A stretch of DNA of 64,000 nucleotides from Lepidodermella squamata. Its lineage: Eukaryota > Animalia > Gastrotricha. The notes under the pieces were generated by a model. The model worked only from the letters and a program-made list of their open reading frames with translations. It did not search any database and was not told the origin of the DNA. The position numbers were made by a program, and so were the translations under genes. Where the stretch lies: the NCBI GenBank assembly GCA_047495785.1, contig JBLDXI010000011.1, positions 186,001 to 250,000 of the forward strand. The letters run 5' to 3'. This document shows, in pieces, positions 1-43,219 of this stretch (positions are counted from its first letter, which is position 1; each line of letters begins with the position of its first letter).

Positions 1-436
1 TAGACACATTTGGGCCGTAGTCGATTTCGCCGGTCGCCGTCAGCGGGTACGTCGGCTTCGGCTTTTTAACCGGCGTCGGCGCGGGAGTCTGCTGGCCATT
101 CGCCGACAACTGGCGCTTTTGCAACCGGCCACCGCCCTGCTGCTGCTGAGCTGCTGCTGGTTGATGCTCTGCGGCGATGGCGTCGAAGTACACGTCATCG
201 TCAACCGCCGTTGTCAACACGTCGTGCCGGTCGAAAAACTCTTTCGGCGAGCGAATCTCCGGCCGTTTGCGCGCTGCCTCGCTGCCGGGCAAATCACCGA
301 TGCACAGGATCAGAAGTAGCAGCAGCGACACGCCAAACGATAGCAGCAATTTGCGGCGACGAGTATTACTCGGTTGTAGTACTGGTTTCAAGTGAACGAC
401 TGCTGCTGTTGTTGATGTTGGGATCGTTGCGGTCAT
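1..436 (-). CDS. 5' part of a secreted or type II membrane precursor protein (runs off the window edge)
   Basis: ATG at 436 on the minus strand stays open to position 1: MTATIPTSTTAAVVHLKPVLQPSNTRRRKLLLSFGVSLLLLLILCIGDLPGSEAARKRPEIRSPKEFF...GGGRLQKRQLSANGQQ...YGPNVS. A basic stretch plus hydrophobic segment suggests a signal or anchor; RKR and QKR are basic sites. It is absent from the ORF track because no stop lies in the window. Confidence 0.6.
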   Translation of the reverse strand, partial: MTATIPTSTTAAVVHLKPVLQPSNTRRRKLLLSFGVSLLLLLILCIGDLPGSEAARKRPEIRSPKEFFDRHDVLTTAVDDDVYFDAIAAEHQPAAAQQQQGGGRLQKRQLSANGQQTPAPTPVKKPKPTYPLTATGEIDYGPNVS

Positions 437-3400
437 TTGGATGAGCCGCCGGCGCGCGTCTCGCGCATCTTCAACACCACCGCAGCGGCACCATCGGCAC
501 CTGATCGCTCGATCGTGATAATGATGAAACCGATACTGATGCGGAGACTGCTGATGAGGCTGAGACTGACTGGCTCTTACAGAGTCGCTGGTTGTGGTTG
601 GGGCCAGCGCGCGTCGCTCTCCTGCTTTCGCGCTGTCTATCTCGTAACATTAAACCCCTATTATCGAATCGATAGCAATAAAATCAATCACCTTGAATGG
701 CAAAAATGGGTTCAATCGAAAATTTTCAAGGATTTTCGCGAGGAAAAAGCATTTTCGAACTTTCGATAAAATATTCACGAAAAAAATCCGCTAAAATTGA
801 GACTGGCATTGAAATTAGGGCGAGCGTTCGCAGAAAAATCTGAATTATTTATGAATTTTCATCGTGAAATGGAAAATCAATAGATCGAGGATAATTTTCC
901 TGCAGTTGGTCTAAAATCAACTAAAAATACAGAAAAAATTAGCAGGAATACACATGGGAAAATACTGGTCGTTACAGTCGCCTAGAAACGCGTGGGACAT
1001 GAAATTAGGGGAAATGACCACATTTTCTAGTTTCTAGGAACCCTCGAAATTCAACGAAATTTCTACGAAAAAACATTGGAAGGAGAGTGGCTAATTCCAG
1101 TAAAACCACAGCTATTCAAATATTAAGAGATAACTCGTGATGCTCTTAATTCGCAATAAAATGAAGGAAGCCGCCGCCGCGCGTGCTTGGTATAATAAAT
1201 CCCGGGCCGCAATTATTGCGTATAGAATGTAGGTCAAACCGTTGAGTTAAATATAGGTCATCTTCCGTGCAATGCAAATAATTCTAAATTTTTCCAAAAA
1301 AAACGAGAATAGTGCGAATTTTTTCGATGACGGAAATTCCTGGACGAAAAAAAGACGGCTAGCAGCAGCAGTAGCAGCTATTAATCGGCGCTATTTTCGG
1401 CTTGCGACGCCAGTCCACAGGGACACACGAGTCACGGTGGCGCACCGGCTGCTGCGCATCATCATGATTGTTTAACGAGCGCACCCGCGCGCGAAAAAAC
1501 TTGCGCAGCCGCTTTTTTGCGCACCGGCCATCACCGACAGGCCTCGCGAGACCGCCGCCAACGACGACGAAAATGCGCGCGCGAGTGCGATGTTGTTCAT
1601 CGAAGATTTTTTTCAGTGTAATACTCATAATCAAGTGGAGGAAGCGAAAGTGATATATTTTCAGCCTTAATTTTAAACAGTGCGATTGTTTATTCAAATT
1701 GACTGGTGGTGGTGGCAAAAAAATATACCAACAGGGAATGATCCACTTTACTGTTTTATCTAGAACGATGGCGAGAAAAAATGCTGGAAAATTCCGAAAT
1801 ATTCGCGTTTAATCTTGAAAAATCAAACATCCCATGGCTGATATCGATTTACACTTCAGACGTTACTTTTGGCTGAGAGTGAATTCAATAAAAATAATAA
1901 TTAAATCTACTAAGATCTATAAGTGGCAAAATTTCCTGATTTTTGTTTTTTTCCGAATTTTCGGAAATCTTGGGCGAAAATGAAAGTTAGCGATGTAATG
2001 TAGGCCAGATGGTATCAGAAATATACTACAAATTTGATCCCGAACCCGTCATTTATTGTTTAGTAAAGGCGAATTTAGCTTAATTTTCCACCATTTATAA
2101 AATTCTTGAAATTATTGCCAATTTCTTTACGATGACCTCAAAACGGACATTTTTCACTATTGTAAAGAAAAAAGGTTATCCTATTAAAAAAAATCGCTGA
2201 GGATGAATATTCTATTTCGAATTAATAGGAAGTTCAATTGTTGCCAATTTAACCGAAACGATGCAGGATATAATATTATTACGTCCGGCCTCGGATGGCT
2301 GAAATAGGTGAATCGATATAACTGTTACCTACTATAGATCAATGCGCAATGAGAAAACCGATATAGGTGCCTAGAATAGAATATAAGAGCAGAGTGCATT
2401 CACATCATCATCGTGATTTCACTCTACTTGAGTTATTATTGTTGCACATCACGCGCGCGGATGAAGAGCAGCCGTCGTAAAAAGGCGGAAAAATTAGTAA
2501 AATGGGGCGCGAGAATAAGACGAAAAGCGCGCTCGCTCGCTCGCTCGCTCATTTCCTACTATACTAGGCTAATAGCGGCGGCGATTTCTGGCGCCGCAGC
2601 TGCTACAGCTGCTAATAGCCTAAAAGAAGACGGCGGAAGTAGTCGGGATGGCGAAACGAAAGAAAGAAGTGCTCAGGCGCGGCTAAGATGAAGGGCGAGG
2701 CGACACATGTCGCGCGCGCGCGCCTGTGTCCACGCGCGATGGATGGTAATAAAATTTCACATGAGGCCGCCGAACTAGCCAGCGAATAATATAAATAAAT
2801 AAACAACACTCACTCGCCCGCCCGCCTGCATGCTTATACAATATAGTATAGTAACTATATATCCGCAAATGTTATAAGATGAGCATCAGAGATACGAACG
2901 AACGAACGACATCGCGAGCGAGCAATTTACGTCGATACAACGCCGGCCCACCGATGCGCATAAATGCGGCGTATTTTGTAAAATTTTACGCTTTAGTTTT
3001 TTCTGCGAGCGCGTAATGAAGCGCGCGCGCGCGGCAGCGGCGCATTAGCCGCGCACAAATAACATCATCATCATCATATATCGCCGTTGCCGTCGTCTTC
3101 TTCTTCTTATAGCTGCGGCAACAATAATAACGCAGCAGTTTTTTTTCGGTGCATCAACTGCTGCATTTTCTTGTCGTTGTTGTCTTCATCGGAAAAAACC
3201 CAAGGCCTGCTGGCGTGCGATGAATTATTCATCGAACTGCTGTTGCTCTCGCGCACCTGTTATTTACGGCGACGACGATGATGATGTCAACCGTGACCTG
3301 AGACAAACACTAACTATATAGTATCTTTGAAGCTATCAATCACAGGTGCCTCGATAGGCGCGCGGTCGAACCACAAAAACAACATCATCCGACATGCAAG

Positions 3401-6400
3401 CGAGCTCGTGCCAAGAATCGATTCGCCAAAAACTAATTTAGCAGACTCGGTTATTTTTTTTAAAGAAATATTCGCACGCTAACTATTGTGAGAAAAATCA
3501 GGAGAAACGGAAAAATCGAATAAAAAATTGAGTTCGAACGCTAAATTAAAGGTTCCAGCTATGATTCCGGATCGGAATTTCGGCAATCGGCGATTTCGAT
3601 TATCGATTTTGAAAATGAGTCGATAAATCCCCATTTCAACTTTCCTGAGGGTTCCAGGTAGCCAGAAGCGATCAGAAAGGGAAAAAGTGAATCGACGAAA
3701 ATCGCAAGAATTAAGGGCTGGAACCTTAGTTTTTCAGCTTAGAAAAAATTCAGGAAAAAATGAAATAGTAGTTGGACCTTCCCGAAATTTAAAAAAATAT
3801 TAGGAAATTCTCAATTCTAAGTTCATTTTCTTCCAAATGTTCGGGTTCATCTAATTTTTCGTATACGCGAAGACTTGAAAGATTATTGAATGTAATAATA
3901 GAACGAATAACAATATTATTATTTTAATAAATTAGATTAAATTAAAAATCCTAAATAAAGAAGAAAAAACTCAAGCTTTTGTTATCCTAATAAAGAAAAC
4001 AATTCGTTGAGTGTATTTTCATAATATTTAATCCCGGCTATTTTTAACCGGCGAACGAAAAAAAAATGTAACCAGGATAAATAATTGGAGACAAAGTTAT
4101 AATATTGGAACCGCAGGGGAGCAGAGAGAGAGAAAAATTGCGTGGTCGTCGTAGTGATATTACGACTTGTTAAAAACGATAAGAAAATCGTCATGGTTGA
4201 TTCCGGAAACTTGCGGGCGCACCGTGTGCTCATTAGACGCGGAAAATCGCTTGATCAAGAGGTGCTTGACCGCGGCGGCGGACGAACGAACGAACGAAAA
4301 AAACCGCGCCGGCTTCGTTCGTGAGTGGGCTATTACAACAAACAACACGACGACGACTCAGCCAGTGAGTGAGAGAGTGAGTGGGGATTAAAAATGCTGT
4401 GTATTATGCCGGCGCCCAAAAACAACACGGCCGCGCTCGCTCGCGGATGAGGTATGGCATTATCTATCGATCTGAGTAGCTGCTGTGATGGTCGCCCCGT
4501 TTGTCATCTATCATCTATCATCGCCGCGTGATGAATGATGGGCGCGACACGGCAGCAGCAGCAAAATAATAATAAAGATGAGTGCAATAAATATAATAGC
4601 CGCGCGTCGCCGTAGTCGATAAAACATCAATATCATCGCGTTTTTGCCGCGCGGTTATAAATATTAAAATACTCACTTCGATAAAAGTCAAAGCCACATA
4701 GGATGACTGCTGACCCCAACCGCAACCGAAATTGGGTCAGTCTTATGTTGATGATCGAAAATATTACAGGTGGAAATCGCGCATAATATTAATTTTTTGA
4801 AGACATATCAGCCCTCTGGTGATTTATAATTTTGATGCACACGCACATCACAGGCCTGCGGTTATTTTCGGTATCGTTAATTAGATTTTCGCGAGACAAG
4901 CCGAATTATTTTTTTCTCAATTTCTGGGACGCGCAGGCGAAATCGATCGGGAATTACAATATTATTACTGCTGTGGATAGCAAGTGTATCGAGTCACGAG
5001 CGAAAAACAAGAATGTGGAAATAAATAAGGAATAAACAAAATAATAGGTTATAAGGATTAAATTTCAGAAAATTAATACAATTTCTAAGGAAAACACCAG
5101 CAAAAAGTTTAAATATTTTCTCGAATTTTTTTCACAAAAATTCAAGCGCATTTTCAGGGTCCTGCGATACTTTCAGCAAAGCCAAAATCGTTTGTGTATT
5201 TTCTGAAATTTCTGGAATTTCTGGAATTTATATGAAAAAAATTAAAATTTTGATTCCTACAGTATAAAAGACCTTTCCGTTCTATAGCCTTAGCCATTAG
5301 TCCCATTTTTTCACCTAATAATTACACCTAATTTATTGATTAAATGACGAGACAAAAGGCTTGATTTGGCGATTTACGAAAATTCAAACAGAATATCTTT
5401 TAGCGGAACCAAAGTCGAAAAATACTCAAGCGTCATTTTTTGAATAATTCTACGAATTTTAGGCGAAGCTTGGGTCCTGAATTAAACAACGCAGTCTTAT
5501 GCCGGATTTTACTGGTGATTTTTTAAATTTTTTTGGTCAATTTTGAAAAGTTATTTCAGGCCACTAGAAAATTTCAAAATTTGGTTCCGAATTAATTTTT
5601 TCGATTCAAAGTGATTGGCACAATGAAAGGTTAGCATCTCGTCGATATTTTGATTTTGAAAATCCTACTAATAAATTCCACGAGGATTCGGACGAGGAGT
5701 AGGCCGACAACAAAACATCCACCCACCCACATTCAAAATAATATTTCGTAAAATAATTAAGGAATGACACTTAATTAATTGAGCTATGATATTAGGAAAA
5801 CATACGCTAAGGGGCGCATCTATAATTAAAATCAAATTTCGGCTGATACAAAAATACATTAGAAAAGGGTGAAGATGGCGATATGATGGGCGGTGATGGT
5901 AGAAAGAAATCAATGATCGGGTAAACAAGTCGATAATTTAATGCGATATAATGGCTACTATTACTTGGTTGTATTGATTGGCTGCCCCGGCGCCATTTTC
6001 ACGCTCATCGGCACGGTTCGTTGGCTAGTTTGTTATATTGCTGATGATGGGCCGTTGCTGAGATTGCGCTCACGATGCGCGATAACAGCAGCAGCAGCAG
6101 CGCAATTTTTCAACACTTGGCACGTAGATAGATAGAATATAAAGTATAAAATGTTTACATCGTTAACGAAAAAACAAGGCCGATGAGCGGCCGCAGGCAG
6201 GGATATTTTCTCGCTCACCGATTGTGTTGTTTATTACTACTTACTTACCTTGATGGGCAGAGGGCGGGACGCTCGAGAGGCTTCTTATGAATTCATTCAT
6301 CGCTGCTGCTGCTGAGCATTTTCATTCAGGTACTTTTTAACACGCGCGCGCCATGATCGCGCTTCTCATATATTTACGACGAGATTTTTCAACACACGCG

Positions 6401-6772
6401 ATCACGTACGCGCGCGCGTATCATCATCATCGATTAGCCAAAACCGCGCCTCGTCTCGCCTGCCTCTCATTATACTGCAATGATATATCTGCTCGTTCAC
6501 CAAATTCAGTGGCGAAAAAATAAAAATAGGTAATACTGCTGATGATGCCTGCAGGCGAATCAAAATATTATATACGGTTGATTAAACACGCGCAGTTATT
6601 ATCATCCACAGTTTTTTATTGCGTGTTTTTCATATTATTATTATGATAATTGTAACAAAAATCAAGAAGAAAAATTGCGCAGTATTCTGTTTTTTTTGTA
6701 GCCGCATTCACTAGTAGTCTCAGTTTTTCTTTCTTTACAAATTTTGTTATTCTCGCTCCAAGTATTACAGTA

Positions 6773-9700
6773 TCACTGCCTCGCAAGTCTCTGTTGGTTA
6801 AATTTTCGAAAAAAATTAAAATAAAAAAATAGAAAAAAATGGTGTAGCTGACCTGTTTGAAGGAGGTATAATTGCCTTGGTAGTAGAAAAGCTTCTTGTC
6901 GTACACGTAAATGATCACTGAGCTGACATTGTCCAGGAAATTTCGATCGTGCGTCGTGAATATCAACGAATTCGGCCAATCTACAATTGATAGAGAAATG
7001 AAGATGATACAAATTATAGAAAAAATCGGTTTTAAAATCGAAATTGTTCAAAATTGTTCAGAATTCCAGAGACTTTTTGGAATATTTGGAATATTTTTCG
7101 AGTCCAGGAATTATTCATGATTTTTTTTTAATTTTGGAAAAATCTGCATATTTTTTCGTTGGGTGAAGTTTTCTCAATTGGGCGAAAATCGCAATCATGG
7201 TAACTAACAGATTATCCGAAATTGTGTGTAAAATTCTCTGAGAAAAACGAATCCTACGTGTTCAATAATCTTTCAGGAATTGAATTGAATTAAATATTAA
7301 ATTAAATCATGAGAGGAAAAAAGCCAAAAGTTTGGGATACATATAGCGAATTCAGTACTAAATTATTCTAAATTCTAATCAGTTCCAACTCCCCAAGTTT
7401 AAGACTCAGCCTCTAACCCTAAACCTAACCAATTAAATAACCGAATATTTTGGTAAGATTTTGGTAAGATTTAGCCCACAATTTTTCATTTATTTTTTCT
7501 GATTTTTATTGGTTCTCGAATGTTTAAAAGCTAAAATTTTTGTAGTTAAAAATGTGGATATTCCACTTCAAATTATTGTAAAATACCCATCTGGTGATAG
7601 TTTGCACCAGAAATTGAATCTTTTAAACATTATTCGAGTAACAAAAATGGTTCTTACTTTGAAGGTACGCCTCCAGCCACATGATGGAGTCGACGGAGAG
7701 CAGCTGCGTCGGCTGGTCGATGAGCAGGAGGGCCGGCTCGGCGTAGAGCGCCTGGGCGAGGCAGCAGACGCGGCGCGAGCGCGGGCTGAGGCGCGACACG
7801 GCCGTGCGCTGCATCTCGGCCGAGAAGCCGAGCCCGTCGAGGATGTGCCGCGCCTTCGCCTCGGCGTCGCCCGAACCTAAGAAGCACAGCTTCTCGTAGA
7901 CGCGCCGCAGCATCATGAACGCGTCCTTCGGCGACACGCTAGCCATCGATGTCCCATCTATACATTGCCGAACAGCACACAAAATCAGCAAAAAATTGAC
8001 AAATTTTAATAAATTATTTTACAATTTTTTTTAAAAAGATGTCATAAATTACTGGATTTTTTTTAATTTTACCTGATTTTAAATTTCACTCAAGGATAAA
8101 AATAAATTAACCAATTCAAAATTCAACATGCATGGTTCAATGAAGCCGAGCCAGAATTCGAGACATTAGGGCTCATAAATGGTTGAAAATCAAAGCCATC
8201 ACTGATTTTCTTGATTTTTCAAAGAATTTTACGAAATTTCTTAATTTTAATCTCATCCCAATTCCTCAATTATTAGGAATGGCGATCCTCCATGTAAGTT
8301 GGAAACGATTTTGAAAAAATCAAAATGGAAATTTCATGGGACTTGGATTATTGGTATTGAAATATCTCGGAGGAAATTTGAATTGTGAAATTTCTCATTC
8401 CCAAGATTTTCTTCACAGGAAAACTTTCAACCTTGAATCAACCTTGAATCTTATTCAATGCTTATTTCCCGTGAAAAGATTCAAAGCAAAATTCAATGTG
8501 AGAAAATGAAATGTTGGATTTTTAAAGTTGTTCAATAATTCGAGAAATGTTGCTTAGTTTCGAATCAAACTGGTAATCTTTTGATAAATATAATTAAAAA
8601 ATATCAACAAATTGGGAATAATTAATTATTCATCTACGAAAGGCGGAACTTCAATTAAAAAAAAAATTAAACATTTTTTAAAATAATTTTTCAATGTATT
8701 TTCCGTTTATATTTTATTTGATTATGTTGTTAAATTTTACCTGGAAGCGTGATGCCGGGCGGGACGGCGGCGGTTGGGGCGACGCCGCGCATGGCCTGCT
8801 CGAGGTAGGCCTCCTCGGCCTTGAGCTCGCGCCACCGCCGTTCGTGCTCGATGACGAAATCGATGGGCGTGAGGTGGCTGGCCTCGAGCCGCGCCGCCAG
8901 CTCCGCGTCCGCCTCGTCCCAGTAGACGTCGAGCGTGGGCCCGCCCAGCGACGACGTCATGTCCACGAACGCGATCTGCGCCGGCGGCAGCAGGCTCGCG
9001 AACGCCGGGTCGCGGGCGACGAAGCGCAACAGCTGCGAGGTGCCGCACTCGCTCGGCCCGATCAAGCCGTATCGCTTGCCGTGCGCGATCGACAAATTCG
9101 CACCTACGAACAGCATCGTTGGTGGAGGGGCATTTCTGTTTCAGAAAAAAAACATAGAAATATAACAAGTAATATTTCGAAAGGTGAGAAAATTGCCCAA
9201 ACATTTGCTGCTCAAGCTAGAAAATTCTCTTTTCCTTTAATTTTTCCGTATTTGTCTTGATAATACCCAACACGATCATAGGATTTTAATATTTTCAGCT
9301 ACCTCGTACCACCGGCTAAGTAGACAAGTTTTGAACGAGAGCTTCGAAAAGGTAAATCGGATTATCGGAAAAATCACTGATTTGTAAAATCGATACTTGA
9401 AATCGATATCGGCTCTGGAGGCTTAAATAAGCCTCGTAAACTGACCGACCGATGGCCCGAAACGTGGGTCAGGCGTAAAACTCGAAAAACCGGAGAAATC
9501 TAGCGCAAGAGCCTCAAATTCATCTTGTTGGGACCAACAATTTAGATAGTTTTCTGGGTCCATCCATTTACTGCTATGATTTTCACAATTTTAGAGTTGC
9601 GACCAGTTATTAGTTGAATTTTTCAATTTACTTAATTTTCTTAATTTTTTGTCTAATTTGTTCGAAATCTTGAAATTTCACGAATCAGTGACTAATTGAT

Positions 9701-12700
9701 ATCAGCATTCTCCGAGGCCGACATTGGAAAACTCAATAGGGCAGCTGAAATAAAATTATATGGAGAATCCCTAAGGCAGAAAAAACAAAAATCGGGATTA
9801 GAACCTCATTTTTATGAAAAATTGTGGAATATTCCAACTGAGCTTCCACGTCTTTTCGAGCACCATCTTTTTTAGAGGAAAATTGGTCTTTTCCCGAAAT
9901 TTTCTCTAAGCAAGATTCCAAAAAAATTGAAAAATTCATGATTTATTTGTTTCTTTTTTAGTTTTTTTCTCAAAAACGGAAATTTTAGACTACGGGTGTG
10001 AAGATAGTTAATTGACTTACACATGGTTGGATCCGTTGGGCTTGCGCTGCGCCCGCTGTTCGGCAATGTTGATGTTCTGAACAAACAGCAGGTAGCCTTT
10101 GCACTTGGCCGGCTGCGGGCGCGCCGCCTCAGCCGCCGCCGCAGCCGCCGACATGGGCGGACCAGCAGCCGCAGCAGCAGTCGCAGGCACAGCTACAACG
10201 GCATTCGGGTTCATCGCCACGACAACAGGCACCCCGTTAGGCCCACTGCTAGTAGCCGTCGTAGCAGTCGCAGCGCCAACACTCGTAGCCGGCGCCGCCA
10301 TGGTGACAGCCGCCGCCGCAGACGCAGCGACAGCCGCGCTCCGTTGCGCCGCCATCATCAGCATGACATTATCGAGGTTGGTAGCTGCCGCCGCATTCGG
10401 AATCGCCTGCTGTTGCTGGTTTGGCCGTTGCGCAACTGGCTGCTGCACGGGCCGGAACGCCCCAGCCGAGCCTAGTTGCTGCTGCTGCTGCGCCGCAACA
10501 GCCGGTGGCAGCAATGTGACCTGGGCGCCCGGGCGAGGACTCGCCTTCCTCGCCACTGGCATCACCGGCGCAGCGTGGCTGGGCGGTGGCAGCTTCGGCT
10601 TCGTCGATTTAGCCTTGGCTGCTGGAACCGCCGTTGCTGGCACAGGCGTTGGGACAATTGTAACAGTCACCTGTGGTTGTGGTTGTGGTTGCGCTACTGC
10701 CGCTGCTGGCATAGGGGGTGTTGCTGCGGCGGGAGGGCTGGGGCCTTCGGCGGACAATTTGCGCTGCGCCGCTTCCTTGGCCTGGCTCAGGAACTCGAAG
10801 ATCATCGACGACATGGTGCGCGATGTCGACGTGCTGTTGATGGCGGCCGCTGCTATGGCGTGAGCCGCCTCCAAATCGTCATCCGATGCGTCCGATTCGA
10901 TGCGAATCGCCTGCGTTGTAGCACCTGCAATCACAAATTATTATAGCAAATGTTCCTCATACGAGTCCAGGCTATAGTAAATTGATAAGAAAAACTCTCA
11001 AACCCAACCTTTCGGACATAAGGATCGGTCTCCCCCTTAGGTGTTCTTGCCTGGAACTCTCGAGCTGGTGGGCATATGTTATACCCCCTGTCCAAGTCCT
11101 CTACGCGACTGTATTAGCATCTTACCAGTTCCGGTTTCGATTTCCTCCACTCAACCCTATTCTCGGATCTCTTTGATCCACCTTGTTCCAGGTCTTCCCC
11201 AACAAGTTCACAAAATTCCCAAAAAGAATAGGAACCAGATCCAGTAACTCTTTCGGTTGGTTACAGGGGTGACGTATCCAGCGGTTTGGTCGCCTTCTCC
11301 CGGGCAGAATCTCTCAATTTTCAATTCAACAGTCATTCCTATCTATTTCTGGCAGTCCGTTAAATCAAGCCTGCCTTATTTTTCATCTAGCGATCTTTTA
11401 CCAACTTTGGATTCAGGCCGTCGACCTACTGAGCAGGTGGCCGGCCTGTGACGAGCCGCAAAACGAAAGATTCAGAAGCCGACACGCCTTCGTCAGCAAA
11501 ATTCCGCATTTAACGCACATATTTTGTTGCACGCGGGCAGTAAGCCTTCAGCTACGAGCATTACGACATGATGTTCGCCTTATGCGACGATTACCCAGTT
11601 TTTATTTCACGCTTACGAGTGAAAACCAGCGTTAATTTCAGACACGTTTTAAAACCTAGCGCACTCATGAACGCAATCAAAACACATTTGAAGCATTTTT
11701 AATGAGGGGGTAGGTAATTTACGCGGAACCGACTCTACGAAATCGCACGAAATCGCCCAATTTCTCTTTGACCACCCCCTTATCTCCCCCGCCTCCCCGA
11801 TTCAGTCAACAAATAGTCGAGAAGGAAAATTGATTCTACACAAAAGATGGCAACTGATGAAAACACGGAATTGTTATCGAATTTCGAAGCAATTGAGCTT
11901 TCAAATTTTGAACGACAATTTGATAATTCGAAAGTTGTCAAAAGAGGTGCTCGCCAATTGACAACCTTCGAAAGAAAGAGGCTCTCCTTAAAATTAAAAG
12001 CCTTTTCTCAATTGAATCTCGAGACCCCGTCCGCAAGGAAAAGAAAGAAACTTGTTCAATGATTACGAATTACGACTCATTCTTGCCTTCCCTGCGCACG
12101 AAGCCTCCAATCAATGATACTCCCGAACTTGAAAACAAAAACCCAATCGGATAAGTGAATTTGCAGCTCAAAAGAGGATTAGTATTGATTCAAGTGAAAA
12201 ACGTACTTGGTGCATCCTTGGCCGAGGCTGCAGCAGCTACTAACAATGGAACAGGCGTTGTTTCGTGCTGCTGCAACTGAGATCGAACGCCGGCCATTGA
12301 TTGAGCAACAACAGGAGCTGCAGGCGAAGACGACACGGAGGATGAAGCCGACGAAGCGACGGTCATGTCGATGACAGACGGCGGGTTCGGCGTCGCTTTT
12401 CGCTGCTGTTGCTGCTGCGAGGCCTGCGTGAAGACAGTGGTTTGAACCACAGCAGGCGCCGCCGTCGTAGTAACCGTTGTAGCTGGGCTTGGCGCCGGCC
12501 GTAGCGTAGTCGAGTAATTGGCCGGTTGGTTCTGAGGCGACGTGCTGGCGAACGAGCCGACGTCGTGCGCCGACTCGGCTTCCTCGATCACGCCGTCTTC
12601 GTCGTCGACGAGGCCCTCCGCCTCCGCGATGCCTTTCGCCATCTCTTCCGCTGCCAGCGCTTTCGCCAATAGCTGCTTGTCGAAAATAAACACATAAAAA

Positions 12701-15700
12701 ATTAAAACAACAACATTAATAATAATAACAGTAACGGCCAATTCACAGTATCCGATTTTGAAGGGAGGGCCAAGGCATTCGAAGTACAGGGGTGCTGGGG
12801 TGTCGCGACACCCCAGCTCGGGGATTCCAACCAGAAGAAGGGTGAAAAACCACAGGGGGCCCTTTAATTGCTTTGGCTGGGTATTGGAAAACGCTTCACT
12901 ACCAGGATCCCAGTGCGCGAAGTACGGGGGGGAATGAGGTGTATCTTACCCCACAGTTCACAAGGCCAAAGTGGAAATTCCCCCAAAAAACCACAGGGGG
13001 ATCCTTTGGTCATAAAATTTGGGCCCGAAAATACCCCCTAGCTCGAGGATCCTACTTCGCACAATTATGCGAAGAATTATCATGGCCCATCAGCCACAAG
13101 TGAAGGTGCCGCCATTCCGTCCTATTCTTAATTTTCATCTTTCCATCTTTCCATCTTTTAAATGAAAGCGATAATCGAACATTGAAAAGCTATTGTTTTT
13201 GGTATACATCAAGTCATTTGAACTTTTTCAAACAAAAACTCGGCAATCGTATGATAAATGATAAGAGGGCTGATAAGAGGGAAGACATGATCACGTACAC
13301 ATCTGGCTTGTCCCACAAAATTACGCATACAACGAAAATACATACACACACAGGCCGTTTTTTTTCATTTGCGGCTCTTTCCTCCGAGAGTAATAATTTG
13401 TAAGACCAAATCCGAAAAAAATCCGGAGAAATTAGGTTCTAGGTAAAATACCGATAATTACCGAGCCAGTTATCAGCCGGTCTCTCCCGGTAAATATGAC
13501 TTCTTTTCGGTGGAATCACTGACAAAGCGTGGGAAATGTCCCAGTCGGTTTGATAATAGAAAAAGGGTTACATTTCCATATAAAATGTTTTGCAAAATTC
13601 GGAAAACTGTTGCGCAACTTATGGGACATGCTACATAATTACGGGACTTTTACTATACGTCGAGTTCAACTTAAGAGCGCAAGCATCATCTCCCGTTTTG
13701 TCCTAACATAAGCCGCGAGTCCGTTAACAATTTATTTGTGGATGCAATACTACAAAATTTCGGTTGTAACGGACAATGGGATAGTTTGCTATGCTGCAAA
13801 CTTGGAAAGGCACATTTTCCTATCATTCCACACGTTAAATTTACCAAGATCCGAACCGTCTTGATCTTGGTTCTCAAAATCAATAATATGACTACAATTA
13901 TTGATTGCAGGGCCCTTGTTTTGATTATAAAAGAAGAACTGACCTGATAACCAATGCCGGGGGTGTTTGATACAGGAGTACTCGCAGATTCGTCCTTCAC
14001 CTCGTCGCAGTTGCTCGCCTCAGGGGTGGCAACCGCCATCGAAGCCGGTTGTTCAGTCTCCGAATCCTCCGGCTGCTGAAGCGGCTCAGCCTCTTCAACA
14101 GCGTCCTCAGCCGCAGCCTGTGGCGGCGATACGCCATACTTCTCCTCAGGCTCGTCCTGCGCATTGTGCTCGGACAGCGGCGATAGTTCCATGTCATCGG
14201 AAGACCCACCGCCATACGCATCCTGCTTCGCCACGCCGTTCTGCTTCGAATCCTGATCTTCGTCTTCCTCGACCTCCGAGTTGAGATGCGAGGCTGGCTG
14301 TTGCGACACGGGTGTGACCTGCTGCAGAGGGTCGCTGCTGGCGTGGATACTCCGCGTGCTGTGCAGCCACGCGACCAGCTGCGTGAACACGTGCCGCTTG
14401 TACGACGTCAGCTGCGACCACGACTTGTCGGCGCGTCGCAGGGCGCCGAACACGCCCCGCACCGGGCAGCCGATGCACTGCGCGAGGTCGTGCTATATAC
14501 ATCGAATCGCGATAAAAACTCAGAGTGAAACATCGAGTTGACATACCGCGTCCATGTTGAGCGCCCGCAACATGTGATTCACCTCATCGGCGATTGTTCG
14601 GGTGTCTAAAGGTGACTGAATGGAAAAGAAAATAAGAATGAAGCCAGGAATCGTTTGGTTGCTCAGAACCGAATTGTCCGAGGCTCACCTTGAAAAGCAA
14701 CAGATTAAATAATATGAGACGTTATGAGTGACTCGGTCTTTTCTCACGTCTCATATTGCCCAAAAACCTCTGATTATGGTTAAAATTCCCTTCAACTCAA
14801 GTAACTAAAAAGACTTTTAACCGAAATCGAACATTTCTAATGCATATAGATGTCTAATCTCATACTCTTTGCAGGGGGAGGGGGAAAGCTAGGTTTGTAG
14901 CCCCTTGTTAGGTTTGTTTGAAGGCTATCTGCTCGTGATTTCTGATTGCAATTCTTCTAATTAGAAGCTTTATTTTGTGAAAACTTAGCCTAAAACTTCG
15001 ATTCTAGTCCTTCGAGGTCCCATCGAAGGTAAAATTTCTCCTCTCAGCTCCCTTATAATAGAACTTAAAGAAAACCGATTGAAACAAACAGAAAAATCTC
15101 AAATCATATTTGTGTAGTAATTTATGAATATCTGACCTCTGCCTCATTACGAGATTTCGAAATCGAAGCGCGACGCGGCCGAGCGCTAAATTTCTTGACG
15201 TCACGACTTACATTATCGGAAATGCTCATATCAGCTGATGGAGACTGAAAAACGACCGCAAATTGAATTAACGCAAAATTCTGATTACTTAGCAGACTCA
15301 CATTTTGATTCTGATTCTGCTCCGCCATTGATCCGGCGCTGTTATTGTCACTGTCACTCGCCGTTGACGGGTCACCGCTCAACTCAGCCGAACCCTGCCC
15401 ATGCTGCCTGGCTTCCTCTTCAAAGGACTGATAGGACGGCGCGGCGATCTGACCAGGCATCGGCGGCATGTCCGATTGCGATGGGGGTGGTGGCGGAGGC
15501 GGTGGAGGAGGCGGCGGAGGTGGAGGAGGGGGAGGTGGTGGCGGAATCGGCGGCATTTGCAGAGCCTGCTGTGGGCGCCTCGGGTCCGTCGGTCGGTTCG
15601 GGCTGTTCGCCTGTTGCTTTGAGCGGGTCGCTGTCGCCGCGATGGCACTTGTCAACAGCGGCGGAGGGATCGGCGGCGGGGGAGGAGGTGGGACTGGCGC

Positions 15701-16383
15701 TGGACCCGGGGCAACACCATACCTGAAAAATGAAGGTGGAAAATTGTCCCTACATTTTCTTCAAATTAATCCTTGAAACCGGTCCCAAGGGCGTAAATTG
15801 AACAATCTAGACATTTGGTTTCTAATAGGCTTGAATTTTGTTCGTGGAAACCCCATTGTTTAAGAGAATGAATTGGATCTTACCTGTGTTGAACGGGGGG
15901 TCGCTGTTGGCGTTGTTGTTGCTGCCAGCGCTGCTCCTCGTGATAGCGCCAGGCGTTGTAGCCGGGAGGAGGCTGGTGAGGCGGCGGGGGCGGCGGGCCG
16001 TAGCCACCGCCGTAGCCGCTGTAGTAGCGAGGAGGCTCGCCCCAGTCGTTGCTGTAGCCGCGGACTGAGGGCGGCCCGGGGGGACCACCGTATCGCCGCT
16101 GTTTCGGGCCGGGTGGTCCTGGTTCGTCGGGCTAACGTGATAATCAAAAATAACTTTCATTAACAATTGGAACTTCCCGGTTTAAAGGTGTAACCCAAGG
16201 CGAAAAAAAGAGATTAGGTCTTGGAAAGTGACTTACTTGCTGCCAATGCTGAGGTTGAGGCGGCGTTTCGTCCCAGTTGGGGAAAGCCGGCGGCGCGTAG
16301 TTCGGCTCAACTTGGTACCGAGGAGCGCCGCGTTTCAAGCCCGCTGAGCCCTGTTGTTCGTGCTGCGAGCTTGGATCGCCCAT
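6773..16383 (-). CDS. ~1225-aa protein: Pro/Gly/Tyr/Gln-rich N-terminus, CUT-like domain, acidic and Ala/Pro/Gln linkers, single degenerate ABC-F-type NBD
   Basis: 12 phase-consistent GT-AG exons: 16237-16383, 15884-16131, 15302-15722, 15212-15244, 14547-14615, 13944-14492, 12207-12672, 10021-10924, 8741-9135, 7658-7957, 6853-6980, 6773-6790 (3678 nt). CUT-like segment: LDTRTIADEVNHML...LRRADKSWSQLTSYKRHVFTQLVAWLH. ABC-F-like segments: HGKRYGLIGP, AEAKARHILDGLGFSAEMQ, EPALLLIDQPT, THDRNFLDNV, YYQGNYTSFK. Confidence 0.75.
12794..12817. repeat. 24-bp perfect palindrome within a GC-rich intronic repeat fragment
   Basis: GCTGGGGTGTCG|CGACACCCCAGC. Nearby G/C-run motifs at 12780-13062 look like MITE debris. 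Confidence 0.6.
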
Positions 16384-20187: not shown

Positions 20188-23100
20188 TTATTGTTCAACC
20201 GGATTATCGATAGCTTCCTCTGTAACTTCGTCGTCTCGACTAGCAATTTGCTGCTTCAAGTATCTGATGACTTTGTTCAGCTTTTTCCGTCTCAATCGCC
20301 ACTCAGCTATTTGCGACTCAGCTCTCGTCGCCAGCGAGTCGCCCTTTGAGTCTAAGAGTTCAACCTGCTCGACTTGCTCGTTGAAAGTCACCCGCCGACT
20401 GCCACCGCCATCTTCCAACTCGTCCTCATCCTCGTTTTCTACCCTCGCCAAACTCACCTGCCGCCTCTCGCCGAATGAAGTCGACGCAACTTCCAATTGC
20501 TCAGCTATTGCGTCGTGGCGTTTCTCAGCCATCGTAAGAGGGGTCTCGAAATTGCCATCCGTCAGTTCGGCTAGTAGCAGAGCAGCGGGTGTGACATTCG
20601 CAGATTCTGGATCAATCATATTTCGGGTTCGTTGCAACACCGGGACATGCGCCTCGAGCAAGGCCTCAACTGAATGCAGATTCGCGTTCACCGAGGCGTG
20701 ATGTAGGGGCACTCGACCGTAGGCATTTCGGCAACTAAGAAGCCGTAGAATCGCTTCCTCGCGTTTCACATGGCCTGTAAAATTAACGATAAATTTGTCA
20801 ACCATTAACATTTGAGAGGTCAGGTTTCGCGAATTTCATGAACTCGTGAGATTATGGCAAGGTAATAGATGTCAAGCTGAGAATTATTGCTGAATGCTGA
20901 ATAGCTAGCAGTGATCTTACTGCAGGGAGTATGGAGGTGATAGGTACCCCCTAACCCTAGGGGTTCGGGAATTGGGAAATTTGTTGAAAAAAACAAAATT
21001 TGTTCCCCTTATGTTTTCAAAATGAAAGTTGGATGTTGCTGTCTGCCATCCCTTTGCAACTGGGAACTAGGCTTCCCCTTCCAGGAGTTCTTCCGGATGG
21101 CCCACTACGGATTGTTTATAACCCCCCCCCCCCCCCCCGACTCAACCCTGGTCTCGAATCACTTGCGCAATTCTCACTTGTTAACGGTCTCTGTTACCTA
21201 GGATATGACGAATCAGACGATGATTGCCGCGGGTTGCAGCAACGTGAAGTGGCGTATCGCCCTTTTCGCCGTATTCACAATCACTAGGAAGTCGTGAATG
21301 TTGTAGCCAAGCAGTAAATCCACCCATACCTTCTCTCGCCGTGTAAAACGAAGCTAAAACGTCGTAGAATTTGATCGACTCGCGACCACCGGGGATCCCA
21401 GCTACCATATGCATAGGACAGCCATTGGTTTTACCCGCGACATTGATGCAGCAGTTTTTATCGATGTTGGGGCCATGCTTACTGAGCAGAAGTCGAACGG
21501 CGCCCAGATTCCGGCCTCGAATTGCGAGGTGAAGCGGCCGGTCGTTGCTGCGATCGGCTGTTTCGAAATTAGCCCCGCTGTTGAGCAGAAATCGAACAAC
21601 TGCTAAGCGCCTTTCATCGGCTGCTTCATCTGCAATGGTATAGGTATATAGTTTGAGGACAACAAAAATAGCAGAAAGGCAATCATCACCACGCCAAATT
21701 CATTCTCAATCGAAACGTAAATTGAATGTTCATTCTCACGTCAAATTGCTTTACCTATGCTTCGAGTTGTTGCTGTAGCTAATTGAGCATTATTATATAA
21801 TTTGTGGTGTAGGTGTTATTCGTTTTATGACTGCGTGTGTTTACTAGTAATGAGCATGCGCGTCAATGTGTTGATGATACGAGCCCATCTCAGGCTAGGC
21901 CGTGTGTGTTGAAGCAACCAGTACGCGTAATGATTATTCGCCACGTTTTGAAGCTTTCCACATCAAAACTACCCAAGCCAAGTCATACGTGGCATAATAA
22001 CAACTTGGGGATAGGTATAGAATCATTCATTTCTGTAAGTATTTCACGTGGAGAGAATGAAGTTATACTACAGCCTACAGCTTTAACGAAATGGCAATGA
22101 TGAATTAAAATGATGATGATGATGAATTAAAAAGAGATTCGAATGTTGGCACAGCCGGCAAATTCAGATCGCTATGCTGATTTTTTTCAGGTTTTGGTAG
22201 CAGCAAAGTTTCAAAATGGCTTGATGTTGAGACAAAAATCTTTTAGTTGGTAAACTCGACGCATGAGCAAGTTGCAAAGCTAAGCTTAAATCTTAGTTTC
22301 CAGTAATGAAAAACGATCCTGAATATTGCCAATTTCCGGCTCGGCACGTAATTTTCAAAGGTTCCTTTCCTCCCTTGTTCGAAGTTCGAAGTCAGATCGA
22401 ACCCAACCGAAGTGTTAAGAACATCGTTAAACATTTTCTTACAGATAGAGCTAACAAAAATGGAAGGGGTTAATTAAAGACTCTTGCTCTGAAGCAAAAC
22501 TGGATCGGTAGAAACTAAAAACAAAAATGTGAGCGATATATCTGATCTGACAGTCGTCAAGTTTTCAAGAGCTATGACAAGCTAGCAACTAAGATTCCGG
22601 GTTTTCTTACTAACCTCCAAATGCTGTACCGCTGGCATATGCTGACGCTACAAGTTCCAACTCTTCTTCAACATCGCCTCGAGCCATCTGAACCAGAACT
22701 AGATGCAAAGCCGTTTGCTGACCAGGTTCAGTCCGAGTATCAACATTCGCACCAGCATCAAGCAACAGCTGCATCGCATCGTATTGATTAGCCAAAGCAG
22801 CTGATTGGAATGGCGTACAGCCATTACGGCCTCGAGCTTCACGCATCTTACCAGAACTTTCAAGCAAAAGGCCTAGAACACCTAGGTGTCCAGTTGCTGC
22901 TGCGGTATGAACAGGCAAATTTCCATTCGCATCGCTTGTTTTCACTAAATTTGGATCTCGATCAATGAGAAGACGAGCGATCGCGACCTTATCAGCGTAG
23001 GCTGATGAGTTGACGGGCCGGGCTACGGGCACAAAACGGCACTCGGCCAACTCGCGAGATGTCGCAGCTTCGACTACTCGGGTTTCAGATTCGAGCAACT

Positions 23101-26100
23101 CGACAAAGGCCGATTTGTTGCAATCGCCATCCAGCCATGTCGCTGCGTTGTGCAGGGCTGTTTTGCCATTGAACCCCCTAGCTGTTACATCGACCTTAAA
23201 GTCAATCAGCAATTTTGCATGACGAGCATGACCGGCGAGGCAAGCGGCGTGGAGACTTGTATTGCCATGCGAGTCTCGGCTGTTGACCTTAGCCCCGGCT
23301 GATAACAGAGCCTCTAAGACTTCGATAGCTCCGTTTGGAACAACGCAAGCTAGATGAAGTGGGGTTCTAGCGACGTCTTCAGGGCCACTCCTAGCCTCCA
23401 GGGCTGCTTGGCATGCAATGAGCAGAGCCGCGACCTCGAGTTGAGCGAACACTGCGGCCCAGTGCAAAGGTGTGCGGCCATACGAGTCGCGAGATTCGAG
23501 GTAGGAAGCGAGTCGACCAATCGATTTCGCATCTTCGAGCAGAAATCTCGCAATTTCGGCTTGGCCACCCCGAGTTGCGGCATGCAGCAACGTATAGGGA
23601 TTATTAATATTCGCCTATGGAATTAAATATACCTTTTTCAAGAATTCAGGTCCAGCTGTCTTACCAAGCTAAGTCTCTTCCCGCGAGCATGTTGTACAAA
23701 AAGTTGAAAGACCCGAGTTGAGCCTAGCTGAGCTGCGAGAAGAAACGGTGTCACGCCAGCTTCCTCTTCAATCGCGTCAAGGGGTGGCCGACTCGGAGCA
23801 TGTGGATCAGCCCCGTGATCTAACAGGACCCTAGCCGCCTCGAGATGATCACCCATGGCAGCTTTGTGCAGCGAAGTGTGGCCTCGACGTAGGCAGACAC
23901 TTTCGACAGTGAACAGGTCTTTTGTCCTCTCATCACCGCTGAGCAAGAAAGCGGTGGATAATCGACCGGTTCTGGCACAGAACTGAAGGGCGTTCTCGCC
24001 AAGGCCATTTCTCACAATGTCATCCAGATTCATCTTTTGCTTTTCTGCAACTTCGATCATTTTGTCGAGTACATATCTGAGAAAGGTTTGAATTTGAAAA
24101 CTCATTTTTGTCTAAGGTATGCATGTCAGTTTTTTCGAAGTTGAACAGTAAACGTGTCAATAAGGTATGTATTCACGCGACTAGTTCTGTGTCTAAGGTA
24201 TGTACTGACTTACTTTGCGAATTCGAAGTTTTTGTAATAGCACGCCAAATGCAACGCAGGGGCTTCATCATGGTCTTTCGGCCCAGATTTCGCCGTCACC
24301 CTAGCGTTGAATTGTTCGACTAGTAGTCGAGCTATGGTGACATCGCCATGCTCACTAGCGATCAGTAGTAAAGACGTCCTTCCCAGCGAGTTTCTCGCCT
24401 CTAAATTTACATTGCCCTTTTCTAGCAACAATCGAATCATCGACTCGTCCTTTTTTCGAACAGCAAGATGAAGGGCAGTATTTCCTTCAGGCACATCTTT
24501 GATATTCGGACGAACATTAAACTCGGTAAGCAGAGCCTCAGCCATGACAATATCACTTCGTTGTACAGCTTGATGTATTACTGTTGCCTGCCCGCCATCG
24601 TTCATGGGCATAGTTCTAACATCGACTCTAGCTTTGAACGTTTTAACCAGGATCTTCGCAATCTCGACATAGCCGTGATGAACAGCTTCATGTAGCCCAT
24701 TGCGGCCAGTTGTCAGCCGGTTGAAAGTTTCATCGATAAGTGGCGCATTGCCAGAGCGTGAACACAGCAAGCGAACTGACTCGATGTCATTCGTTGATAT
24801 CGCGTAGTGAAGGGGCAGGTCACCCTTAGCATCAGCTTCGCCTAATAAAAAGCCACGCCGCCATGCTGAAAGCAATTTGGTAGCACCTCTTTTCTTGTAG
24901 TGAACCGCTATGTGTAAAGATGTGACACCATCCAAGCCTAAAATAAAATTTTAAATGTTCATATCCGCGAATTTTTCGAGCTCTACCTAAAGAAGGGAGA
25001 GAGCACCGAACGTTTATCTCAGTGTTGAATTCTAGCAGAGCCATTTGAATGAAATCGCATGAATCCCAGCGAGCTGCGACGTGTAGTGGGGTCATTTTCG
25101 CCTTGTCTCTCGTCACCTGTTCCAGGGGGCGAAATTTCTCAAGTCCATGTGCGATGATGAGCCGCCTAGCGAACGCGCATGAGTTGTATCGGGCGGCTGT
25201 GTGAATCACAGCCTCGCCTTGGCTCGTTCGCTGCTCGTCGAGGTAACGGCGGGGGTCGGCGCTGATTTCTAGCAAAAAACCGAGGACGGACGGCTGGTTG
25301 TAGCGAGCAGCGACGTGGTACAAGCCCTGCTCATCGCCGTTTTCATCCGAGTATTCTTCGTGTGGCGAGAGGTAGTCCTCCTTATAGCTTTTTTGAGATA
25401 CGAAAAACTTGCGTAATTTCTCGACATCGCCTGACTTGACCATTTCAACCAACTGACTTCTCTGAAAACAGCAATAATTGAATAAAATCCGGCTTTTTAA
25501 GGTTGAATTCGCGGCTTTTTAATGCCGTGGGAAAAATATTGGCAATTTATGTTGCACATTTCCCCATCCGCCGGTGTTTCCTCCGCGCGCGCGCTCATAT
25601 TGGCTGGGCCTTGTTGCCCAACAACTAAGATAATTACAGCCTTCAGGCGCGCGCGCACGGACGAGAACAAAGACGACTGCGCCCTGCGCTGAGTCTGCAA
25701 AATGCTTTCAAGAAAATAAATAAGCTTAAATTAAGGCAGATTTTGTTGTCGAAAAACTTGACAACATTTGGATTAGCATGTACTTAGTTCTTATTTACCC
25801 ATCGATTGAATAGAAAATAGAAAATAGTGCGCGCGCAAAATTCAAATCTACCTAACAAATTGCGAAAGCGCGCACGAGCTATTTTCGGTGAATTTGGGGT
25901 AATTTCATCAAGATATAGCTGAACACTCTAACCATTTGATTATTTTCGCGCTACATCGAATTGATTGAAAAATGTTCTTGCCCTTGAAAGTTTGTGCGTT
26001 TGAAAAGTTACCGCTCATTACTAGAGCCGCTTATGTAGAAGCGGATGTAGAAATTCCTTAGAATGATCAAAGCTCAAGCGCTTCTTAAAATGTAGAAAAA

Positions 26101-42020: not shown

Positions 42021-43219
42021 ATGGCCGCATGTTTAACCCTACTTCTCACATTGGCTCTGTCTGGGATGCCGTTATTCACAGCAGCAGCTTATATTTCCTC
42101 CGAAGAGGGGCTGCTCCGCCATTTCACTGAGGAATGCGACGTTAAAAGCATAACACGGCCTGATGTCAATGCAACAACGCCAACAGTTGTTACGGTTCAA
42201 TTTCTACCAGCTCGTTTCATTGCGCTGGATGAAAAGTCCCAAACATTCAGCGTGATGGCATCTATCGGCTTGTTTTGGAACCATCCTTGCGTCGCGTGGG
42301 ATCCTGATGGCTGGGGCGGAGGGGCTTCGTTCAGAGTAAAAGCAGTTGAAACCTGGACCCCGCCACTTTATGCAATGAACGCGGCTGAAGTGATGCCGAT
42401 TGTCAATTTGATAACTGATCAGGATTTGTGGTATTTTGGCTCTGATGGCTTAGTAACTGCGTGGATCTACGGCATCAATCGAGCTTTTTGTATTTTAAGG
42501 TACATTTTTATATTAATTCCACTTAATTTTTTTTTATCATATTATCATGTTTTAAAAGATTGGAGAAATTCCCGTTTGACACTCAAATATGCACATTCAA
42601 TTTTGAATCGTTCGAAGATGCCAGCTATATCACGCTAGCTTTGAGCAACGATTCTAGTCTTGTCCAGGATGGGAGTTCGCCATTTCTCAGCCAGGTCGAT
42701 GTTTGGACGAACGAGGGCTTCACGTTCCAGCGAATAGACATTGGCCGTGGCGGCCCCCTGAAGACGACCTATCGTTGCGCCTTCACGTTCAAACTCCGCC
42801 GCATGCCCGGCCTCTACATGGTCAACATATTCTACCCCACTTTCTGCCTCACCATCCTGCTTTTCGGGTCGATTTTCATTCCGATAGAGTCGCCGGATCG
42901 ATCCATGTTCTGCGTCACGGTCCTACTAGCGTTTTCGGTCGCCCAATCAACGATTAACAACATCATTCCGACGACGAATGAAATGCCGTATGCGTTGATT
43001 TTTGTCACGGTTCAACTCGGCGCAGCTGTGGTCATTACGCTGTATTGTTTGATTTCATGCGAGCTGGCGAACAGGCAAAATGAAGCTGGGAAGTCTGTCC
43101 GATCAATATGCGGTCGAAAAATTTCGACACTTCGATTGATGGATATTGCAGCTTATAGCATCATGTTTTTCGTTCTAGCCGCAGCCGATATTGGGATTTT
43201 CGTGAAAATGACAAGTTAA
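42021..43219 (+). CDS. Cys-loop ligand-gated ion channel subunit, paralog 2 (~379 aa)
   Basis: Exons 42021-42499 and 42559-43219. Cys-loop [15 protein letters not shown]; TM region nearly identical to paralog 1. Confidence 0.9.

Follow-up and report, generated by a model that had tools for sequence, protein, structure and literature searches.

ATP-binding cassette F (ABC-F) proteins are generally regarded as ribosome factors that have two domains and are driven by ATP. One of them, bacterial Uup, carries a DNA-binding C-terminal part and gives a precedent for a DNA-binding appendage on an ABC-F protein; its two nucleotide-binding domains (NBDs) are both active, and it binds DNA through a C-terminal coiled coil instead of a helix-turn-helix (HTH). 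Mammalian ABCF1 coactivates OCT4/SOX2 transcription via a polyglutamine (polyQ) and K/E-rich low-complexity domain; this coactivation requires neither the binding nor the hydrolysis of ATP, and the NBDs still contribute to it (PMC8555894). Here we describe a gene on the minus strand of a 64-kb stretch of the Lepidodermella squamata genome (contig JBLDXI010000011.1, positions 186,001 to 250,000; hereafter the window, to which unprefixed positions below refer) that very probably encodes, in 12 exons, a CUT-like segment and an ABC domain within one protein of ~1,226 residues. To our overall explanation—one gene whose product combines an HTH, a catalytically dead first NBD (NBD1), and low-complexity regions and would act as a nuclear scaffold—we assign a probability of roughly 60%.

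The C-terminal domain of the window protein, like that of a relative from a second lineage, P0001, matches ABCF1 (ABC50; human structure 5zxd) best, by sequence and by fold, and this match is colinear with NBD1 (residues 19–238). A K/E-rich or polyQ low-complexity region ahead of the NBD is a second likeness. The window protein differs from ABCF1 in having NBD1 only, without the PtIM linker or second NBD (NBD2), in the loss of its catalytic motifs, and in an N-terminal HTH, which ABCF1 lacks. With CUT proteins (ONECUT/HNF-6, CUX, and SATB; PF02376) it shares a predicted five-helix, lambda-repressor-like fold and the spacing PL[DN]T ... W ... [FY]..L..W[LM]. Unlike them, it has one domain copy only, no homeodomain in its gene, and no match to Pfam CUT, and their SQGT(L/I)S is replaced by P-V-R-G-V-F in the window and by N-I-R-A-L-L in P0001. 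The MuB transposition ATPase (2mqk) likewise places a small lambda-repressor-like HTH N-terminal to a P-loop nucleoside triphosphatase and is the sixth-best structural match of the N-terminal domain, but it is a catalytically active bacteriophage AAA+ ATPase with no sequence relationship to the window protein. Uup is among the ABC-F matches of the NBD, by sequence and by Foldseek.

The case for a single polypeptide is built on comparison with the second lineage. Searches used single exons or the relative's stored protein as query. A HMMER search with exon 9, run against one representative per 50% cluster of ~15 billion predicted proteins, found one true relative cluster (P0001, 545 aa; E 8e-15), its other matches being 12 ordinary ABC proteins only (E > 1e-7). 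A cluster mate, P0014 (550 aa), is 97% identical to P0001. The two proteins lie on independent metagenome contigs (L001 and L002, from different samples and assemblers), and on both contigs a single uninterrupted open reading frame (ORF) of 545–550 codons encodes the CUT-like segment, preceded by a K-rich stretch, and the ABC domain, with a charged linker between the two. In P0001, the K-rich PIKKKKKRLRP directly precedes the CUT-like domain, whose counterpart of the window segment reads PLNTALLVKNIQRIAREKDWNLHDLSVEVDINIRALLIAFEKSDIPWTMHNYRRKILYRKLARWMEV; an acidic, K/E-rich linker of ~190 residues follows, and the ABC domain then runs to ..WLSSYLK. The relative's sole intron is ~75 nt long, GT..AG (L001 2595–2669), and its last exon, of 46 codons, ends ..GNYSSFKSRLSS and a stop codon. 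The initial annotation had proposed that a CUT-like and an ABC-F-derived domain are joined in one polypeptide and had named an ortholog search as a check; that search, once run, returned one relative cluster with both domains, present in one ORF on each of two independent contigs.

The window exons match P0001 in colinear order. The start of exon 6 aligns without gaps to residues 83–125 (21% over 43 aa, E 0.002) and the tail of exon 8 to residues 300–321 (50% over 22 aa, E 9e-4), followed by exon 9 (41% identity, E 7e-23) and exon 10 (47%, E 3e-28), while exon 11 matches the last exon of L001 (78%, E 8e-26). Two of the predicted joins can be read against unspliced sequence in the relative: the exon 5/exon 6 join ..MDA/HDL.. 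is colinear with ..WNLHDL.., and the exon 11/exon 12 join FKQ/RLARQ-stop mirrors FKSRLSS-stop. The intron between exons 10 and 11 (6981–7657) is identical in codon and phase to the relative's intron (YLK-G/AT-WPG in the relative, YLQ-A/AT-WPN in the window). Together, this colinearity with the relative's ORF and the common intron position place the exon chain beyond chance. The remaining ten window introns have no counterpart in the relative's gene, which implies intron gain in the window lineage or loss in the other. L001 has 36% GC in addition to its short GT-AG intron.

The locus could instead hold two adjacent genes, a low-complexity CUT-like gene (exons 1–6 or 1–7) and an ABC-only gene with its start in exon 8, upstream of it, or at the exon 9 Met, the unbroken splice phase being a coincidence. 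The joins from exon 6 through exons 7 and 8 to exon 9 are without RNA support, the introns between them are long (885–1,282 nt) and contain repeats, an in-frame ATG lies within exon 9 (ORF 8730–9116), and read-through of the exon 6 donor would yield a CUT-only product. Against this arrangement stand the relative's uninterrupted ORF, which holds both domains on two independent contigs; the replacement of the exon 9 Met by Leu in the relative; and purifying selection on the linker exons in their predicted frames. The position of the ABC start is a further obstacle: exon 8 closes with its conserved sequence, GY[IL]LFV..INI, and also contains ~270 linker codons, so that the ABC domain would be incomplete without this exon. 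We consider two separate genes highly improbable. Two observations do count against our overall explanation. The sole public run containing the locus is genomic DNA (run X1), with unspliced contigs, and a single transcript rests on comparative evidence; in addition, the window protein and its relative are only ~20% identical in the CUT-like domain.

The gene model extends from 16383 to 6773 on the minus strand (Table 1). All introns of its 12 exons are GT..AG and the phase is unbroken throughout, as established by hand assembly and a script check; the spliced frame spans 3,681 nt, comprising 1,226 codons and a TGA at 6775–6773. Exon 5 (14615–14547; acceptor TTCCATTCAG, donor GTATGT, phase 0) encodes SPLDTRTIADEVNHMLRALNMDA, and exon 6 (14492–13944; acceptor GTATATAG, donor GTCAGT, phase 0) encodes a peptide that begins HDLAQCIGCPVRGVFGALRRADKSWSQLTSYKRHVFTQLVAWLHS. 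These two exons splice exactly, both in phase 0, to the peptide quoted in the initial annotation, which is intact in no single ORF of the mechanical ORF list. The rebuilt 12-exon chain also bears out the earlier statement that the downstream exon phases run unbroken into the ABC-F region: the four junctions of phase 1 or 2 on the way to the ABC domain form the codons AGT, GTA, GAT, and AAT, all open. The open stretch of exon 5 has no preceding Met, and an upstream exon is therefore required. Exons 1–4 are linked to the rest by splice phase and by this missing Met; they have no orthologue support, which counts against this part of the model. At exon 7, a tandem acceptor (12672–12677, ..CAAG/CAG/CTA..) offers two options, both phase 0 and one Gln apart. 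No second copy of the gene was found in the window by tblastn, and no Rfam families matched there.

Differences between the window and X1 bear on whether the predicted exons are coding. The comparison covers exons 6–9 (exons 1–4 lie outside the compared stretch), and 37 exonic sites are among the differences listed, with 15 more beyond these. Of the 37 listed, 33 change the third base of a codon and 34 leave the amino acid unchanged (binomial p = 2.5e-12). Synonymous changes make up 6/6 in the exon 6 linker, 6/7 in exon 7, 18/20 in exon 8, and 4/4 in exon 9, and the only exonic indel listed is an in-frame 3-nt insertion in X1 at 10282, where exon 8 is rich in Ala and Ser. This synonymous excess indicates that exons 6–9 are coding and under purifying selection rather than spurious open frames. 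X1 also has a 9-nt deletion at 10931, in the intron, a short way before the exon 8 acceptor. Summed contig depth in X1 reaches ~45,000 at 9297–9495, ~5,500 at 12680–13077, and ~300 at 13277–13475, compared with ~60 for exons; these deep segments look like high-copy interspersed repeats within the long introns.

The C-terminal domain is a single NBD1 derived from an ABCF1-type ABC-F protein. Among proteins of solved structure, exon 10 aligns with residues 111–196 of human ABCF1, within NBD1 (E 1e-21); exon 9 falls before it, on residues 19–53, and exon 11 after it, on residues 198–238, so that the three exons keep their order along ABCF1. The next matches of the window exons after ABCF1 are YheS, YbiT, ARB1, EttA, and Uup. 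The NBD of P0001 behaves in the same way (ABCF1, E 1.6e-24, with the same order of ABC-F matches). The Pfam ABC_tran profile, a check that the initial annotation had suggested, scores 41.7 bits on P0001 (E 2.2e-10; gathering cut-off 25) and 16.6 and 23.6 bits on single window exons, below the cut-off because introns split the domain. An AlphaFold model of the P0001 NBD (predicted local distance difference test, pLDDT, 68; predicted template modeling score, pTM, 0.66) gives ABCF1 5zxd as its best Foldseek match (E 1.3e-5), and all of the top ten are ABC-F chains (5zxd, then nine more). The model is of low confidence over residues 1–43, which probably reflects the absence of the last exon, and it cannot confirm the exon 8 tail as strand beta-1 of the NBD, which it probably is.

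The domain stands alone. The window protein stops 5 codons past the last NBD1 strand, the relative stops at the same place, and no NBD2-like frame occurs in the 6.7 kb downstream (1–6700). The ABC-F layout of two tandem NBDs and a PtIM linker is thus absent: there is a single NBD and no interdomain linker. The earlier description of an ABC-F-derived module is accordingly upheld by the exon 10 match to ABCF1 NBD1 and the ordered placement of exons 9–11 along ABCF1.

Alignment with seven canonical ABC proteins (alignment A6) shows that most catalytic motifs of this NBD have been replaced. In Walker A, canonical GPNGCGKS has become GPSECGTS in the window and GPSGSGSS or GPNGSGSS in the relatives, with loss of the Lys. 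The Q-loop (.EQ.) reads VDM in the window and IDM in the relative, losing the Gln; the signature LSGGWRMR reads LSPRSRRV and LSPKSRKV, respectively; and Walker B, canonically LLLLDEPT, reads LLLIDQPT and LLIVDQPS, a change of Glu to Gln with the Asp kept. In the D-loop region, NHLD is replaced by QLLS in the window and NLLS in the relative (LD to LS). The H-loop His, kept in THDRNFLD (window) and SHDRSFLD (relatives), is the only tested motif still intact in the window and its relatives. These replacements are nearly alike in the two proteins (LSP[KR]SR[KR]VC, DQP[ST], LLSVD) despite an overall identity of 40–50%.

The loss of the same motifs in two lineages, together with mostly synonymous changes within the species, marks the NBD as a putative old, conserved pseudo-ATPase, not a decaying copy. 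Loss of all catalytic motifs, together with the lack of RNA support, would also suit a functionless ABCF1 pseudogene copy, decaying or recently shuffled, but the frame stays open across 12 exons, 34 of the 37 listed X1 differences are synonymous, and a relative at 40–50% identity shares both the degenerate motifs and the point at which the protein ends; we give this possibility almost no credence. More conceivable, if still improbable, is an NBD that binds ATP or another nucleotide without hydrolysis and serves as a ligand-controlled switch or dimerization module. Degenerate sites in heterodimeric ABC proteins provide a model for such a nonhydrolyzing switch, P0001 and P0014 retain the P-loop glycine pattern (GPSGSGSS, GPNGSGSS), and the Walker B Asp and H-loop His persist in both lineages. 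Yet the Walker A Lys is gone in both lineages—and Walker A Lys mutants of ABC proteins generally lose nucleotide binding—while the window protein has in addition a Gly-to-Glu change in the P-loop. The Q-loop Gln, LSGG signature, and D-loop are lost, and there is no second NBD for a composite site. The initial annotation had called the module translation-factor-derived, a term that fits its origin but probably not its activity.

For the N-terminal domain, structural evidence comes from an AlphaFold model of residues 52–132 of the orthologue P0001, not of the window protein. The model (pLDDT 71) has helices at positions 13–27, 31–38, 42–51, and 61–78 and a short turn. In a VIA-align comparison with 48,161 PDB representatives, ranks 1–5 are all CUT domains (Z 6.8–6.2, 66–76 of 81 residues aligned): HNF-6 (2d5v; Z 6.8, root-mean-square deviation 2.8, 68 residues aligned), CUX2 (1x2l; Z 6.7), SATB1 twice (1yse and 2o49; Z 6.5), and SATB2 (2csf; Z 6.2). 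The MuB N-terminal domain (6.0), HNF-1A (5.5), the SATB1 CUT-like N-terminal domain (5.3), and POU-specific and Xre-type HTH domains (~4) follow. A predicted lambda-repressor-like HTH fold, in a domain of ~68 residues, is well supported by these results, and we regard a CUT-type or lambda-repressor-like fold of the N-terminal domain as probable. Its predicted placement closest to CUT draws modest support, from rank and not from margin.

Several results weigh against a CUT assignment. Pfam CUT (PF02376) had no match in window exons 5 and 6 at E ≤ 1, nor in the complete orthologous domain (P0001:50-135) even at E ≤ 10, and P0001 alone matched no CUT chain in the PDB by sequence. A profile including the window rows did align with the CUT domains of ONECUT1 and ONECUT2 in the expected register, with E values no better than 0.4–0.8. 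The CUT motif SQGT(L/I)S and the PKPW turn are not kept (PVRGVF...DKSW in the window, NIRALL...DIPW in P0001), leaving as survivors of the SQGT/PKPW residues the Gly, in the window only, and the Trp. Finally, helical models often reach Z values of 6–7 by chance—VIA-align carries its own caution that values below 8 are common—and the CUT matches are in a statistical tie with the MuB N-terminal domain. The initial annotation's CUT-like claim therefore stands as a structural match and falls as a Pfam profile match, so that "CUT" here is a resemblance of fold, not membership of the Pfam CUT family. Its remarks that the recognition segment is diverged and that no homeodomain is visible both agree with our results: SQGT is kept in neither protein, and a homeodomain was matched in no window exon and not in P0001.

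These points leave room for an N-terminal domain that is a generic or independent lambda-repressor-like bundle (of the Xre, POU-specific, HNF1, or MuB N-terminal kind) and not CUT-derived, in a protein that is an adaptor without a nucleic-acid role; the domain may then mediate protein contacts rather than DNA binding. The missing Pfam CUT match, the absence of a CUT sequence match from P0001 alone, the modest Z with MuB and HNF1 close behind, and the lost SQGT recognition motif all fit this possibility. The independently predicted ESM Atlas model of P0001 does too: its residues 57–132 match bacterial HTH_3 proteins (template modeling score, TM-score, 0.52–0.65), not CUT. The SATB1 CUT-like N-terminal domain, moreover, is an oligomerization-associated module. 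A CUT relationship is favored instead by the occupation of ranks 1–5 of 48,161 by CUT domains over 66–76 of 81 residues and by the weak ONECUT profile matches, which are in register with the fold match. Foldseek with the P0001 52–132 model found nothing significant and an Xre-type HTH list, but its best TM-score (0.63) is again a CUT domain, that of CUX2. An Arg at the Q position of the CUT "SQG" and two Trp are kept in both lineages, and language-model neighbors of P0001 include HNF-1_N and CUT clusters, at scores below 0.9 that make them leads only. An ESM Atlas shape search with the P0001 52–132 model gave TM-scores ≤ 0.51 only. On balance, we think a generic bundle unlikely and retain the CUT-like HTH as the preferred description.

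Because it has no NBD2, no linker, and no catalytic residues, the protein should be unable to work as an ABC-F ribosome factor, and ribosome clamping and ATP hydrolysis in the ABC-F style appear excluded. It would most likely be a nuclear scaffold. In such a scaffold, the CUT-like HTH would tether the protein to a nucleic acid, which is probably DNA; the dead NBD1 would present a fixed docking surface for a partner; and the low-complexity regions—poly-P, -Q, and -A in the window protein, K/E-rich in the relative—could make multivalent, coactivator-type contacts. PIKKKKKRLRP ahead of the P0001 domain is a hint of a nuclear signal. The closest precedent for this scaffold, the most economical model, is ABCF1, whose coactivation needs no ATP and persists in an ATPase-dead form (PMC8555894). 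A scaffold or DNA-tether mechanism is a tentative proposal, somewhat less probable than its opposite. A bolder version, a new class of DNA-tethered regulators in which a CUT-type HTH brings an ATP-independent, ABCF1-derived docking domain and low-complexity regions to chromatin, seems to us unlikely. If it were true, the ATPase-independent coactivation of ABCF1 would have been made a permanent, stand-alone function, and a translation ATPase would have evolved naturally into a transcription-factor module.

The protein is a new domain architecture built from known folds. Literature searches found no described CUT + ABC-F protein, consistent with the initial annotation's view of a novel chimera. 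One other lineage with the design was found among ~15 billion predicted proteins (50% cluster representatives), and no further relatives came from the library-wide search or from word searches with P0001, whole or residues 52–132. A scan of metagenome contigs with the last-exon alignment returned ordinary bacterial ABC-F genes only, at 37–53% identity. With a single other lineage found, the family must either have a narrow range or have gone mostly unannotated. The protein library does not contain the window protein itself, and its coverage of invertebrate proteomes is not measurable, so that rarity is provisional. As a conserved one-NBD derivative that lacks catalytic motifs and carries an HTH, the protein would represent a new pseudo-ATPase family. 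Such a family would offer a natural test of which ABCF1 functions need no ATP and would add an example of a CUT-shaped domain that is not paired with a homeodomain.

Table 1. Exons of the CUT-like/ABC gene and its polyadenylation signal (window positions)
Feature	Position	Strand	Description
Exon 1	16237..16383	-	ATG at 16383, first after in-frame stop; 49 codons, P/Q-rich; donor GTAAGT
Exon 2	15884..16131	-	G/P/Y/Q-rich low complexity; AG/../GTAAGA; phase 0 in, 2 out
Exon 3	15302..15722	-	Run of ~22 prolines, disordered; split codon AGG; donor GTGAGT
Exon 4	15212..15244	-	33-nt micro-exon SPSADMSISDN; good acceptor, GTAAGT donor, phase 0; least certain exon
Exon 5	14547..14615	-	Predicted helix 1 of CUT-like domain (SPLDTRTIADEVNHMLRALNMDA); colinear with P0001 PLNTALLVKNIQRIAREKDWNL
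Exon 6, first 45 codons	14358..14492	-	Predicted CUT-like helices 2–5 (HDL...WSQL...QLVAWLHS); matches P0001 83–125
Exon 6, rest	13944..14357	-	Acidic disordered linker
Exon 7	12207..12675	-	A/T/S/Q-rich linker; NAGNAG acceptor (12675 or 12672)
Exon 8, main part	10101..10924	-	A/P/Q-rich linker
Exon 8, tail	10021..10100	-	KGYLLFVQNINIAEQ..., start of ABC domain; matches P0001 300–321, just ahead of P0001 NBD
Exon 9	8741..9135	-	Degenerate Walker A GPSECGTS; Q-loop Gln to Met; helical subdomain begins
Exon 10	7658..7957	-	Signature region LSPRSRRV (vs. LSGGWRMR); Walker B LLLIDQPT
Exon 11	6853..6980	-	H-loop THDRNFLD; last NBD strands DKKLFYYQGNYTSFKQ
Exon 12	6773..6790	-	RLARQ + TGA; protein stops just past NBD1
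AATAAA poly(A) signal	6615..6620	-	~150 nt downstream of stop

On L001, the genes flanking the relative's copy, at 3391–3930 (+) and 4852–5445 (-) of that contig, match no Pfam family. Elsewhere in the window, an ankyrin-repeat-rich gene lies at 22610–24935 (-), with Pfam Ank matches at E 1e-35 and 9e-32 in two long open segments. Two similar open segments on the plus strand, at 38700–39359 and 42560–43219, give Neur_chan_LBD and Neur_chan_memb matches below the gathering score; these Cys-loop channel-like segments are probably a tandem duplicate pair.

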